A stretch of DNA of 64,000 nucleotides from Trichosphaerium sp. ATCC 40318. Lineage: Eukaryota > Protista > Tubulinea. The notes beneath the pieces are model-generated. The model saw only the letters and a list, made by a program, of their open reading frames with translations. It was not told the origin of the DNA and did no database searches. Shown piece by piece: positions 1 to 27,602 of this stretch. Where the stretch lies: positions 74,675 through 138,674 of the forward strand of contig JALMLS010000285.1 in NCBI GenBank assembly GCA_038496445.1, given 5' to 3'. The position numbers were made by a program, and so were the translations under genes. Within the stretch, counting starts at the first letter, position 1. Every line of letters starts with the position of its first letter.

Positions 1-1475
1 TTCAAGTACGTGTTATTTTTAGTACAAATGTACCATTCCATTAAACGTTTAGGCAAGTACCACGTGGGTATTGGGATTCTGTTCAAAATCAAAGAGATGC
101 AATGGATGTTATTGGCCGCGAACTAGGAGTTAAAGATATGGCTGGGTGGTATAATATTAGGTACAATGATGTCACCAAAATATCAGGAGGCATTAGTCAC
201 AAGTAAGACAATACAATAAAAAGACCCAACCTTACCTTGTTTGCTTGTAGGTATGCACATTCTATTTCAAAACTACTACGAGACGTTTATCCTAAGTACA
301 AATGGCGACAATCCAAGTTCATGTAAGCCTCTCTATTAATAAGCCAACTGGGTATTAAATAATACTATGTAGGCAGACACCTATGAGTAAATTGACGTTC
401 ATGCCGAAGATATCTACAAAGAATTATAAGCACAAACAACCAGAGATTTCAGAGTATGGTACCGTATCACCTCCGGAATACTAATCTAATTGTCATCTTA
501 AAACAAAAGGTATGATGAAAACTTTTTCGCTGCTCCTGCATCTGAATATAGAAGACTTAGACGAAAGAAACTTGGACCACTTAATTTAGTACAAGGTTCA
601 AAACGTTATAAAAGAATTGTTGCTAAAGTACAAGAAATGACAAAGTCCTTGAATATTGTAAACCCGGAGTCTTGGTACCTCTTTTACCCACATGGTGTGA
701 AGTATTCTCGGCCTCTAACACATAATCTAGGTATCGTATGTCTCCGGATATAATCAAGAAAGCTGGGGGTGCAGGAATACTTCGGTATTGGCCACAAGCA
801 CTTCAATACTCAGAACCTCATTTTGCTTGGAACTGGAGGAAATTTTCTTATTCGATAAAAAAGGCAAAACAGAGGTACACTATGCTCACTACATATATTG
901 TTATCTTAGGGTTTTATTTAGTTGGCTTCTTGAGTGTATGCGTGTAATATTCCCAGATATTGCTGTGGAGGAAGAACGAAGCATAGGATTCAGAGAAAAT
1001 GGCACTCCGCTGACAATTGACGTTTTTGTTCCAAAGTATAACATTGCCATTGAATATCAAGGTACCTCTGAATGTATTTTACACTACTAACTGTATCACA
1101 GGAGAACAACACTACCAGGACGTCTTACCTTATCACCATGCATCAGCACAAAAGCGGCGAGATTATGAAAAGTTCCAACAATGTGAGGCAAATGGTATTC
1201 ATTTGGTGCCTTTACCTTACTGGTGGGATTTACGTGTTGGATCCCTTCGTGCAACTATCAAACATTTTATACCACACGTGCCTCTGAAATCGTCATCAAG
1301 GATACATAAACCAGTATTGGATGTAGATCAATATAAGGCACTTGACGTTGATAATCTCAAGTGTAAGGTTTTACAACAACCTGGAGAAGTCATTACTTTT
1401 GGATTATTTGATGAACACAGACTTCGAAATGATCAATATAACGCTTCAAATAGTAGGAGACGCTCACCACAATAA
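1..1475 (+). CDS. Trp-rich helical-repeat protein with C-terminal PD-(D/E)XK (RAP/Vsr/DUF559-like) nuclease domain; 5' end outside window
   Basis: Spliced exons give PRGYWDSVQNQRDAMDVIGRELGVKDMAGWY...YPKYKW..KF repeats, then IFPD..EEE...LTIDVFVPKYNIAIEYQGEQHY...RRDYEK...CEANGIHLVPLPYWWD. Paralogous to 24035-26598. Confidence 0.85.
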
Positions 1476-22450: not shown

Positions 22451-23794
22451 TTAGATGATGGACTTTACAGCAAGCTGTAAGGTTCTATAAATTTGTTAAG
22501 AAGAAAGAAAAATGTAAAAGAGTAAAAGTATGTACAGTTGTTGTGATTTTTTTAACCAGGCTTTGTTAAATCTTTTCATTTCCCAAATCACATCTGGGTA
22601 CAATTGTTGTAAAGCGGCTGGGTAGTACCTATACATGTATTTTCCCCCGAGAAATTCAAGTTGTCTCGTAGAAACACGGTACCTAATCCCAATCAGACTA
22701 TAAAAATAAAAACTACAAAGTTCATAAGTTACCATTCAGAAGGCGAACTGATACCATAATGCGCTCTTACACGCTTCAAAAATTGAACCTGACTCTGCAT
22801 AGTACTCCAGCGACCATTGCGCCTTTTTTTGGGTGGAAAAAGCCGTTCAAGTGCGTTTGGTAGACTTGTGTACCTAAAAAGAAAAGAATTAATATAATTT
22901 CAGATACAAAAGAAAAGAAAGACCTTGCTAAGATTGTTTCTCCTCCAGCATCAACAATTTGATCCCTGGTGACATGATTCCAACATTCCTTCTCGTAAAC
23001 ACGTAATTGTTGTCCAATGACATTAAACATATCTCTCTGGCGAGTGAGGCTGTCCCAGTAGTCAATAGGTAAGAATCTACCAAGAATGAGGTTTTTATCG
23101 ATTATTTTTACCGCTTGGACTCACGAAAACTTCCAAGGGAGCCAATTATGTGTTGGGTATAACGCTTGCAAACACTTCGACAACGACAAATTGTACCTGT
23201 GTAAAAAGTCAACAAACCTATTATTCACTTGCACTTATCGATATGCTAGTGCACTACGGGTGTACTTACATGCGTAAAACAGCGTATCCTTCTGGTGTCT
23301 TCTCAAACACGCCCTGTGGTACTTTGTACCAACCATCAAGATTCTTGACATTTAATTTTTTGGCAGTAGTGTTAACGACTGTTTGTTGGTGTTCAATTTG
23401 AGTCCAATGGCGTTGAGGTGCTTTTCTAATGCAATGTTTAGATGTAACAATGTGTTGTGTGCCCTCGTACTTGAAGCGCCATAGTGCCCACGCATAGCGT
23501 GGATATACGTCCTGCAGAGCTTTTGAAACAGAATTACCGTATCTACAACGCGTTAGACAAAAAGAGTGCAAATTGCTGTTGTGCTGACACGCTTAGTACG
23601 CCCCCACCACCTTTGGCGTGAATTTGTCGCGCTGTAGCATTATACCAAGCTTCTAAGTGCGTTACGCCAAGTTTTTTGCCAAGTTTATCAAACGCTTTCG
23701 CTCTATTGTCTATACGCGTCCAAGTACCTCTGTATCAATTAGAAGAAGCTTTTTCTCTGCCAAGAACTTACCGACAAACTGCGTTTGTGCTCAT
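22451..23794 (-). CDS. Trp-rich helical-repeat protein (4 repeats) lacking the nuclease domain
   Basis: Repeats such as KKLGVTHLEAWY..GGGGVL..YP..W..WRF. Last repeat WYRVSTRQL..LGG..YYP matches the paralogs. Stop follows KKSQQL-TLQLAVKSII. Confidence 0.8.
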
Positions 23795-24034
23795 CACTGT
23801 CACATTGCTCTTTTGAAGTTAACGTGCTGTGGCTCTGCTTCACGTGGGCGGTTGACTTTTTTTTTATTGTGGCTTAACAGCTCGTTAGAAGTCTTGTTCG
23901 CCAGTTTTCCAGCTCCATCAGCAAGTGATTACCATTTGGTCGTGTAATTTGACATTACATCCAAACGTTGGCATACAACGCTCATGGCGATGGAATTATT
24001 ATTTATACAGTCTATACGTCAGTTGTAGTAACCA

Positions 24035-26598
24035 ATGTAAGTCTTTTAGCCTGTTCGCACCCAAACAGCTTACAATTACGCGTTAGGCGCGTCTATCACC
24101 TTCAAGTAATTAATAATGTGGCTGAACAGCTTAAACTCAAACACCTTGATGAATGGTACTCAACACCAACAAAAGACGTAGTAACACACGGCGGTGGTAG
24201 TACACTAGCGTAAGTCTTTACCACATCGGGTAAAAACGCGTAATAACGCTTTACATAAATTTTAGATACTTCCAAAACTCAGTTTCAGTATGCTTACATA
24301 CGCTGTATCCTAACCACAAATGGATTCCTTGGAAATTTGCGTACGACAGCTGTATTTCACATAAAGAAATAACTTCCAAAACAAGAAAAGTACCAAGGCA
24401 GTTTTGGAGCAGTATCAAGAACCAAAGAGCTCTATTAAACCATATTGGTAAAGAAAATAGTTTAAAGCATCTAGATGATTGGTATAAACTTGAATTTGAT
24501 CACGTGTTTAATAATGCAAGCGCACTCTTGAAGTAAGTCTTCTTCCAACCGCAAACATACACGACTACAATTACTAATGACACTTCGTAGCCACTACTAT
24601 GATGGATCGCGATTGTATTTATTGGAGAGCGTGTTTCCAAAGCATAGTTGGGATCCAAGTAGATTTATGTACGTCCCATAGTTATCACTCTTTATGCTTA
24701 CTAAAAATAACAGCAACTTGCGTGAATCGACAAAATCTAAAAGTAACGAAGGCTACATCAATACTTTAGCTCAAAGACTAAATGTTAAGTGTCTTGATGA
24801 TTGGTATGCTGTAAATAATACAGATTTATACCGTCACGGTGGAGACAGGATGAGGTTAATACTCAACACAATACAATTCTAAATATCAACATAGGAACAT
24901 TGTAAATAGCTCTTTAATGACGCTTCTCACTAGAATGTATCCGCGCCACAACTGGTCAGCAAGTAGCACGTATGTATGCTATATCTTTCTTTTACTCATC
25001 TTGTATTTGTAGAAATAACCTAAAAGACAACGATCAAAAGAAAATGATACTAGAGAAAACTGCTAAAAAGCTAAATATAAAAACATTAGATGACTGGTAT
25101 ATTGTATCTTATGATGCGTTTACCAGTCAAGGTGCAAACGGGTTTCTCATGTAAGTAATACCTATAACATATAACACTAACAAGTATCATTCAGGGATGA
25201 ATACAACGGGTCTATTATTGAATGTGTGGCTAGTGTCTATCCTGGACACGAATGGAATAAAAATCGTTTCAAGTACGTCATTGAGTTACTGACTAAACGA
25301 AACCTTAATGTTTCTTAGATCTTCTAGTTCTCTTAATAAAAATGAACGTAAAGAATTATTTGATAAGATTGCTGCAAAGCTAAAAATAAAGGAGATAGAA
25401 CAGTGGTATAGTATTGAGTTTAGCAAAGTTTTAAAAAATGGAGCAAGAAAAATAATGTCGTAAGTGAAGCTTTTCGTTTTTTTTTGTAGACTTGCTTAAC
25501 ACTTGTTCGTTGATCTTGTTATTTTAAGAAATCTATGTAATGGTGATGCATTACATTCTTTACTATCTCAAATATATCCACATCAACAGTGGTCTCCATG
25601 GAAGTTCATGTAAGAATAGTATTTGTAACGTTTTTCTTATACCACTTTTTGCAAGGTCATCACAAGGATATTGGCGTTATGTTAGCAACCAAAGAGATTT
25701 TCTACTCTCTGCTCAGAAGCATCTTGGAATTGAGGAACCTGAAGAATGGTATAGTGATTATTTTGGGTTGGCGGCCTAATATAGTGAAGGTATCGCGTTT
25801 CAACACAGCAAATACGAGACTTGGGAGGTCAAGGTATCTTGACGTATTGGCCACAAGTTCTGGTACGCGATTCCTTCAGTTGTTAAGACCTAACACGTAC
25901 AAAAGTTGCGTATCGAGCCTGAGTTTCCATGGAAATGGAAGAAGTTCTCTTATTGGCAAGGCAGACTATCAAAGCAACGGTACATTTACACAAGTTTTAG
26001 TGATGTTTGTTTGTTTATTAGAGTTGTAGGCAGCTAATTAAGTGTTTGCAAGTAATTTTCCCACGTGCGCAAGTACTTGAAGAACACGTTATAGATTTAA
26101 GTGCAAGCAACCAAGAGAGAGTCACTCTTGATGTGTACATACCGGAGTTTCATCTAGCACTTGAATATCAAGGTAAACTGACGAACCGATTTGCGTTCTT
26201 TCTGACATACGTCATTAGGAGAGCATCACTATAGGGATGGAGTATTCTTCACTGATCAATTTTCAGCCATTCAACGCACAAGGGATACAGAAAAGCTTCA
26301 AAAATGCTCAGACATAGGTATGTTTCATAGACGATACTGTTTTTACGAAAGGGATTAACCTAACGTAGGAATTTGCTTGGTTCATATCCCTTATTGGTGG
26401 GGCGGTGGTATAGACGAGATTGTCATGACACTGCGTTCAAATGCAAGTCATATTGACTTGTCAGACATAAAGTGCCAGAGTGACGCAAAACCATTAATGG
26501 CATTACCTGAAGAGACCAACGTACCCTCAAAGGGTATAAACCTAATGTTTCCGAATAGTAATCAAAACATGCATTCTCCTTTGTACGCTACTCAATAA
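24035..26598 (+). CDS. Trp-rich helical-repeat protein (6 repeats) with C-terminal PD-(D/E)XK (RAP/Vsr-like) nuclease
   Basis: Six L..WY...G...YP.H.W...F repeats; nuclease VTLDVYIPEFHLALEYQGEHHY...RDTEK..C..IGICLVHIPYWW. Start probably an AT|G split by intron 24037-24086. Confidence 0.88.
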
Positions 26599-26877
26599 AA
26601 CTACATGTACAATTAAAACCGGAGGCGGTTTTGGTAATTTTTGTGCAAAAGAAGAAAGAGCAGACAAGTTTCCGTAGTTGTAATGGTGTGAGGCTGATAT
26701 GTTTATTCTTGAAACTTGGGCCATTGTAGCTTGTCGGAAACTGTTCCACATTATTTCTTCTAAAAAGAATCTATTTTTAAATTTAGAATTTCAATGAATG
26801 ATACGAAAATAAAGTTAGACACAAATCAACAAAGCATACTTGCAACACAATAACTCAGCAACAACAAACATAAAGCT

Positions 26878-27602
26878 ATGACAGAATACAAACTAGTAAT
26901 CGTAGGTGGCGGTGGTGTTGGTAAATCCGCACTTACAATTCAACTTATCCAAAACCAATTTGTTGATGAGTACGCACCTTAACTTGACTGTTTTAAAGCG
27001 TTTTATCTTATAATAAGTAGATACGACCCAACAATTGAAGACAGTTACCGCAAACAAGTCGTCATCGATGGTGAAGTATCATTATTGGATATTCTCGATA
27101 CTGCCGGCCAAGACGAGTACTCCGCAATGAGAGATCAGGTAAAGCACCGTTTTGTACGAATTAACGTCTAATATATCGATTAGTACATGAGAACTGGCAC
27201 TGGGTTTCTCCTTACATACTCGATAACGAGTTCGAGCAGTTTCGACGAAGTAAACAGATTCAGAGAACAAATTCTAAGGTGAGTTTTTGCCCATGTTTAG
27301 TAACGCGCGGTTTTGTTCCAATTTCTCACTTTCTTTTTTTTAGAGTCAAAGATAAAGACAGAGTTCCAATGGTATTGATTGGAAACAAAGCTGATCTTGA
27401 GATCGAAAGACAAGTTACTACAACAGAAGGCGAAGCTGTCGCTAAGAACTATTGTATACCTTTTTTTGAATGCTCTGCTATGACACGACAAAATGTTGAA
27501 GAGGCTTTCTTTGAACTTGTTAGAGAAGTAAGGAAGGTAGATGCCCCTGTAAACAAAAAGGCTTCAAAGACAAAAAAATCCAAACGATGCTCAATACTTT
27601 GA
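26878..27602 (+). CDS. ras: Ras GTPase (RasG/RasD-like)
   Basis: [43 protein letters not shown]; CaaX CSIL. Confidence 0.97.

Follow-up and report, generated by a model that had tools for sequence, protein, structure and literature searches.

The window analysed here is a stretch of 64,000 nucleotides (nt) from the protist Trichosphaerium sp. ATCC 40318 (assembly GCA_038496445.1, contig JALMLS010000285.1, positions 74,675 to 138,674 of the forward strand), and all positions given below refer to this window. Between 23984 and 26598 on the plus strand it holds one intact, intron-rich gene, hereafter the window gene. The encoded protein consists of five helical repeats of about 75 residues each, a divergent terminal repeat and a C-terminal Vsr-like nuclease. 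Each internal repeat is encoded by two exons, an 'a' exon of 123-147 nt and a 'b' exon of 75-81 nt, separated and followed by introns of phase 2. An earlier note on this DNA had described the repeats as symmetric two-exon cassettes, had taken them as a record of tandem duplication of an exon pair, and had proposed that half-repeats might be skipped or shuffled in frame. In this study, we show that the two-exon cassette is a property of the whole gene family in this genome and not special to the window gene. We give a gene model, describe the repeat unit and the nuclease module, and weigh how the recurrent introns came about.

The window gene and its splicing

Three-frame translation of 24000-26700 yields short open stretches, spaced by 40-70 nt that start with GT and end with AG. 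The open stretches carry a repeat motif in two parts, ..NQR.FL..LGI..LDDWY..(10)..GG..LL and Y.GS....L...YP.H.W.PWKF. An explicit model, checked exon by exon, comprises 17 exons and 16 introns. All introns run from GT to AG and measure 40-69 nt, and the coding sequence of 1830 nt (609 codons) is read in a single frame to the stop codon at 26596-26598. Two intron sites recur along the repeats: the A site lies after the GG..L segment, and the B site after W...F, its intron starting 2 nt past the Phe codon. Introns 1-12 are of phase 2 without exception. Exons 2-12 measure 123, 75, 147, 78, 141, 75, 138, 78, 141, 81 and 93 nt, every length being a multiple of three and every exon being of the 2-2 class.

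Exon 1 (23984-24024), with the start codon and the N-terminal 13 codons, is tentatively placed, no other ATG-initiated frame joining exon 2 in phase 2. It is followed by a 62-nt intron of phase 2 (24025-24086), the GTAGTA donor of which is likewise tentative. Repeat 1 (24087-24385) was set by half-profile matches and unique or best GT..AG solutions. It consists of exon a at 24087-24209 (123 nt) and exon b at 24266-24340 (75 nt), with phase-2 introns at 24210-24265 (A, donor GTAAGT) and 24341-24385 (B, GTACGA, 45 nt, stop-free). Repeat 2 (24386-24713) has its exons at 24386-24532 (147 nt) and 24591-24668 (78 nt) and its phase-2 introns at 24533-24590 (A, GTAAGT) and 24669-24713 (B, GTACGT). Exon a of repeat 3 (24714-25012) spans 24714-24854 (141 nt) and its divergent exon b 24895-24969 (75 nt); the phase-2 introns lie at 24855-24894 (A, GTTAAT) and 24970-25012 (B, GTATGT). 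The b half of this repeat was missed by the profile, W...F being degenerate and its Phe replaced (...WSASS|T); the junctions were set by eye, and the frame closes. For repeat 4 (25013-25318), the exons are found at 25013-25150 (138 nt) and 25195-25272 (78 nt), and the phase-2 introns at 25151-25194 (A, GTAAGT) and 25273-25318 (B, GTACGT). Repeat 5 (25319-25655) is made of exons 25319-25459 (141 nt) and 25529-25609 (81 nt) and of phase-2 introns 25460-25528 (A, GTAAGT) and 25610-25655 (B, GTAAGA). All these sequences lie on the plus strand. For repeats 1-5 of the window gene the donors agree with the earlier description, which had assigned mostly GTAAG to the intron after GG..L and mostly GTACG to the one after W...F: GTAAGT is used at four of five A sites, with GTTAAT at the fifth, and GTACG at three of five B sites.

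The terminal or cap repeat (25656-26029, plus strand) has a layout of its own. Its exons at 25656-25748, 25790-25862 and 25906-25979 are followed by introns at 25749-25789 (within a Trp codon, TG|G, phase 2), 25863-25905 (phase 0) and 25980-26029 (CG|G, phase 2). The phase-0 intron is backed by a paralogue at 726-899, where the same 21 residues are read uninterrupted. The Vsr-like PD-(D/E)XK nuclease module occupies 26030-26598 on the plus strand, with exons 26030-26172, 26219-26317 and 26369-26598 and two phase-1 introns (26173-26218 and 26318-26368).

Intron 24341-24385 contains no stop codon and keeps the frame, and hence reads as coding. Searches were run with single exons or natural intron-free homologues; the query for a gap test was the unspliced open stretch of 100 residues at window:24234-24533. 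Across 154 homologues, this intron appears as a gap at query residues 36/37-50/51 in 384 of 393 repeat-level alignments, and the modal gap length is exactly 15 residues, which confirms the predicted intron.

A family-wide two-exon unit

The family sample comprised the window and 20 other loci of the genome, with 26 arrays in total. Local profiles of the two half-repeats (A, 43 positions; B, 24 positions) match 120 A halves and 96 B halves in this sample, in strictly alternating order (ABAB). At each junction between halves, every GT..AG pair that leaves both frames open was enumerated. Introns were found at 168 of the 183 half-repeat junctions, at the same two sites, and 161 of them are of phase 2. 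The A to B junctions carry an intron in 89 of 95 cases (phase 2 in 86) and the B to A junctions in 79 of 88 (phase 2 in 75). Where the enumeration left a single solution, phase 2 was obtained in 50 of 50 junctions. The B intron begins exactly 2 nt past the Phe codon in 63 of 79 cases. Among the internal exons of the sample, 127 of 136 are multiples of three; most 'b' exons measure 72-78 nt, and most 'a' exons 147-156 nt. Splicing brings the half profiles to within 9 nt and 15 nt of each other. This equals the modal spacing of the halves in 154 intron-free homologues, namely 3 residues (305 of 616) and 5 residues (381 of 570), an independent measure that shows the splice sites to be correctly placed.

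Junctions that lack an intron sit at the 3' end of the arrays in 12 of 15 cases. They concentrate in the last one or two units of loci L003, L005, L007, L010, L013, L014, L015, L016, L018 and L019. Either the terminal unit never had these introns or intron losses were biased towards the 3' end. The terminal repeat has introns of its own, in the Trp codon, and is usually devoid of the A and B introns. Regarding donors, GTACG is the commonest at both sites in the family (27 of 89 at A, 26 of 79 at B, 53 of 168 overall). The division of donors between the sites, GTAAG at one and GTACG at the other, is seen in the window gene only and was rejected as a family trait. The donor consensus of the organism seems to be GTAYG rather than GTAAG. 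The family is large: the 70.3-Mb genome assembly contains more than 150 scored matches among 1033 candidates, and 1887 cluster representatives match at E <= 0.001.

Paralogues within the window and the Trp-codon intron

Two further members of the family lie in the window, and both have phase-2 introns at the positions for which the earlier note had pointed to 1-330 and 22870-23600. A head-to-head paralogue without nuclease (22499-23734, minus strand) has phase-2 introns at 23588-23543, 23470-23426, 23269-23197 and 23124-23077. A third paralogue (45-899, plus strand) is cut by the window start and shows a phase-2 A intron at 203-250 and a B donor at 323 (AT|GTAAGC). Intron 23470-23426 of the minus-strand gene is again 45 nt long and stop-free; it occupies the same junction, repeat 1 to repeat 2, as intron 24341-24385 on the plus strand. 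A gene finder would take each of these two introns for 15 extra codons. Recent copying of introns between the head-to-head genes was considered and rejected, as the two 45-nt introns, the one pair compared, agree at 14 of 45 bases.

In all three genes the Trp codon of the last repeat is split by an intron (TG|G), as had been stated before. It lies at 25749-25789 in the window gene, at 675-730 (plus strand) in the third paralogue and at 22732-22683 (minus strand) in the head-to-head paralogue. The same intron is present in the terminal repeats of nine arrays elsewhere and is absent from locus L018. The exon past it restarts with G-TAY, and the same four bases thus stand at both intron ends (window 25746-25792 and 673-733). 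This match could fit an origin of the intron by a small tandem duplication.

The repeat unit and the nuclease module

An AlphaFold model of a three-repeat homologue (P0026, predicted local distance difference test score (pLDDT) 89) shows a unit of four helices and a Trp-rich loop. Mapped onto the model, the B intron lies in the inter-unit linker and the A intron in the last turn of helix 3. Because the A intron falls inside helix 3 of the four-helix unit, neither the 'a' nor the 'b' exon corresponds to a folding module. Foldseek with the three-repeat model gave no match at E <= 0.001, scans of single exons and full homologues against Pfam and NCBIfam gave no family above threshold, and a sequence search of the PDB gave no match. 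Among Myb and helix-turn-helix DNA-binding domains, Myb_Rap1 totals 44 bits over the repeats of homologue P0001, with no single stretch passing the threshold.

The nuclease motif is found in 45 of the 154 top homologues, most of the 154 being repeat-only proteins. One homologue, P0006, is encoded on a 1.37-Mb metagenome contig and reaches 2124 residues with 21 A halves. The window gene carries the motif LDVYIP..LALEYQG|EHHY..RD.EK..IPYWW, which matches the module in these 45 homologues. The best Pfam match, to DUF2726 in homologue P0077, reaches 23.6 bits, short of the 24.7 cut-off. In the model of P0151 (pLDDT 91.5), a two-repeat homologue that also carries the C-terminal module, strands 186-196, 203-210 and 215-220, helix 233-253 and strand 257-262 belong to an alpha-beta-beta-beta-alpha-beta core. 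The exons of the window gene, taken singly, can be aligned to this model; of the two phase-1 introns in the nuclease module, one lies at an end of a strand and the other at an end of a helix. D207, E218, G221, H224 and D244 do not vary among 34 homologues, and the window gene has all five (LDVYIP, EYQG, HHY, RD). At the third position of the nuclease motif stands Q, in place of the D or K of related domains.

Known proteins close to the module include E. coli Vsr, a very-short-patch-repair endonuclease, and the Vsr-like homing endonuclease I-Bth0305I (PDB 1vsr, 1cw0, 3r3p). P0151 matches 1vsr with a probability of 0.97, a template modelling (TM) score of 0.53 and a root-mean-square deviation of 4.0 over 125 columns, and the family has a conserved acidic motif, D...E-x-Q-G-x-x-H. 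Sequence identity, however, is about 15% with Foldseek E-values of 0.3-0.5, and the module of the present family, a predicted nuclease, is fused to a long eukaryotic repeat array. An array of helical repeats followed by a small domain of the PD-(D/E)XK type is also known from organellar RAP-domain proteins of the HPR, OPR and FASTK types. The best structural matches of the whole P0151 model are Toxoplasma gondii mitoribosome subunits (9i05_Xg and 9g6k_L9; Foldseek E = 0.01-0.05). In contrast to the hairpin of 35-40 residues in HPR, OPR and FASTK proteins, the unit described here has about 75 residues, four helices and a Trp-rich loop, and Pfam RAP gave no match at E <= 1. We infer that the repeats bind nucleic acid or a partner and aim the Vsr-like nuclease.

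Origin of the recurrent introns

The recurrent introns are most readily understood as inherited, a reading to which we assign a probability of roughly 0.78. An ancestral internal unit that already carried the A and B introns would have been copied repeatedly, through tandem as well as gene duplication, while the family expanded in this lineage. Inheritance would leave the same two introns in every internal repeat and make every internal exon a multiple of three, exon 'a' contributing the linker and helices 1-3 and exon 'b' helix 4 and the Trp-rich loop. Both sites being common to 168 of 183 junctions, the ancestral unit is likely to have had both introns. Identity among A halves averages 30.0% within genes and 29.1% between genes, with a maximum of 58%, and 108 of the 120 A halves have their best match in another gene; neighbouring repeats are not more alike than repeats of different genes. 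With identities of about 30% both within and between genes, the duplications are old and family-wide. The two shared sites support the proposed duplication of an exon pair, but the duplications cannot be taken as events of the window gene itself. In equal-sized samples, the A halves of the genome have their nearest neighbour in the same genome in 64% of cases, as compared to 25% expected. This excess fits a lineage-specific expansion, and amino acid composition could contribute to it. The terminal repeat has its own set of introns and therefore would have taken no part in the expansion of the internal unit. Internal repeats of the lineage thus probably derive from one intron-bearing founder unit, and the terminal repeat has had a history of its own. 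As a historical footprint, the pattern is the ordinary trace of old duplication.

The window gene is a clean new example of an already known gene architecture. Shuffled animal modules are typically encoded by symmetric exons of class 1-1, whereas the symmetric class found here is 2-2. In repeat proteins such as nebulin and those with immunoglobulin (Ig) and epidermal growth factor (EGF) repeats, intron positions recur, exon phases are symmetric and the repeat number varies among relatives, as in the present family (PMC1553488). Each block of seven domains in nebulin has the same exon pattern after internal tandem duplication (PMC1553488). The present family differs from these proteins in that the unit is split over two exons with one boundary within the domain, in that the introns are tiny (40-69 nt) and the organism is a protist, and in that the duplications are old (about 30% identity).

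Several observations weigh against inheritance of the intron layout or against the model on which it is built. At about 30% identity, divergence is too high for a tree to prove descent from one intron-bearing unit, and just 20 loci besides the window were sampled. One a+b unit aligns as a single small domain to TetR N-terminal domains, weakly (Z <= 5.7, a score that helical models can reach by noise), and for the nuclease the E-values from Foldseek exceed 0.01. Exon 1 and the start codon are tentative, without confirmation by a homologue or a transcript. No transcript, complementary DNA or annotated protein of the window gene was found, the best cluster representative being at most 42% identical; the splice sites therefore come from comparison. 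A word-index protein search with the 100-residue open stretch gave no candidate, and no transcript-derived fragment is on record at 55-175 residues. Further points come from other lineages. The motif YP...W.PW[KR]F, used to scan metagenomes, returned at least 120 loci, 87 of them with family members; a metagenome pattern demanding GTANG right after the Phe codon gave no match. Contigs of low guanine-plus-cytosine (GC) fraction (0.24-0.31) and many other relatives carry complete arrays without interruption. The ERZ795042/3 and Ga0181858 contigs, which are eukaryotic with a GC fraction of about 0.41, have an interruption in about 40 of 60 A-to-B junctions and hardly ever in a B-to-A junction. 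Their intron measures 52-64 nt, is of phase 1 and splits the second Gly codon of GG (G|GN), which puts it 13-19 nt upstream of the A site in the Trichosphaerium genome. Donors of the introns in the ERZ795042 and Ga0181858 contigs (L025, L039, L050, L065, L069, L083, L101) are GTAYG-like. Contigs of Ga0154020 are mostly uninterrupted, and four of their junctions hold an intron of phase 2 whose offset equals that in the Trichosphaerium genome. As the lineages differ in intron site and phase, a recurring intron is a property of the lineage, and phase 2-2 does not hold for the family as a whole. The family spans protists and intron-free contigs, the latter probably viral.

These differences between lineages keep parallel or guided gain in contention, that is, arrays that were intron-free at first and into which introns entered or were copied at the same site of each repeat, lineage by lineage. 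The complete intron-free arrays and the different recurring intron of the ERZ795042/3 and Ga0181858 contigs, in phase 1 within GG and with no counterpart at the B site, speak for such a course. So does the Trp-codon intron, the donor of which comes from the conserved Trp-Tyr codons TGG-TAY (TG|GTAY), since conserved motifs can serve as ready-made splice sites. We nevertheless regard parallel gain as unlikely for the Trichosphaerium genome. It would require very many independent hits with identical position and phase at 161 junctions, and the exon bases flanking the A and B sites show no proto-splice consensus. The Trp-Tyr and GG motifs are found in the terminal repeat too, yet it is without A and B introns. 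Moreover, the units of this genome tend to be mutual nearest relatives, and the same-site introns of the head-to-head pair have no common sequence and so show no sign of recent copying. A guided form of the process, in which introns spread repeat by repeat into pre-existing arrays at a site specific to each lineage by homology- or motif-guided propagation in repeat families, is in our view quite improbable. That the interruptions are no introns at all, the locus being a decayed pseudogene with frameshifts and stops or a set of chance reading frames, is hardly credible. The missing transcript evidence would agree with decay, but all 16 interruptions run from GT to AG within 40-69 nt, without them a single frame of 609 codons runs to a stop, their removal restores the spacing of the family, the nuclease motif is intact, and the neighbouring Ras gene has similar short introns including one with a GTACGC donor.

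Another explanation gives the phases a role: symmetric 2-2 exons could be skipped or recombined, in splicing or in evolution, and thus produce arrays of varied composition and varied target specificity. The earlier note had favoured such a route to diversity. Any of exons 2-12 is indeed removable without a frameshift. The prior chance of two matching phases (2 and 2) is about one in three. Repeat number ranges from 2 to 21 among homologues, mostly 4-7, so whole units are gained and lost. Intron-free relatives vary equally in repeat number, so introns are not needed for such change, and the order of A and B halves is strictly alternating, which leaves no sign of shuffling. No half-repeat is missing. 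In 154 proteins, 1,291 neighbouring pairs of halves run AB or BA except for 100 AA and 5 BB pairs. The AA gaps span 21-102 residues with a mode of 32 (3 + 24 + 5), beside four split hits of one half; the five BB gaps span 46-59 residues in proteins, and BB gaps in DNA span 49 residues or more. Such gaps match an undetected, diverged half in size, and the remainder of about 8 residues that a deleted half would leave was never seen. At the DNA loci, 7 and 51 further same-type adjacencies behave likewise, and 4 more are one half reported as two hits; all 7 AA gaps in the genome DNA are at least 119 nt, and the gap mode at the 87 metagenome loci is 96 nt. Overall, no missing half was found at about 140 same-type adjacencies among about 1,750 neighbouring half pairs. 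Skipping of one exon would break the domain, as the A intron interrupts helix 3 within a compact unit. Retention is the converse possibility. Of 168 introns, 72 are multiples of three in length (56 expected), and 22 of these are stop-free as well and could be retained in frame; however, shuffled sequences yield 17.6 +/- 3.2 such introns. Selection for translatable introns was therefore rejected. Half-repeat skipping or shuffling as a route to diversity is not supported by these data, and we consider it very unlikely to explain the symmetric exons. Diversification of the targets of this nuclease family by exon skipping accordingly finds no support in the pattern.

Use in annotation and the neighbouring gene

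The practical value of the pattern is in annotation. Two fixed splice sites of phase 2, with an 'a' exon of about 150 nt and a 'b' exon of about 75 nt, amount to a rule for gene models. Such a rule would serve what may be a thousand repeat units in the genome, including those followed by stop-free introns of 45 nt. Besides, the contrast between lineages with no introns, with a phase-1 intron in GG and with two phase-2 introns is a small natural experiment on intron gain versus inheritance.

Directly downstream of the window gene lies an intact Ras-family GTPase gene (26877-27600, plus strand) with three short introns, two of phase 2 and one of phase 0. The donor of its first intron (26970-27030) reads GA|GTACGC.

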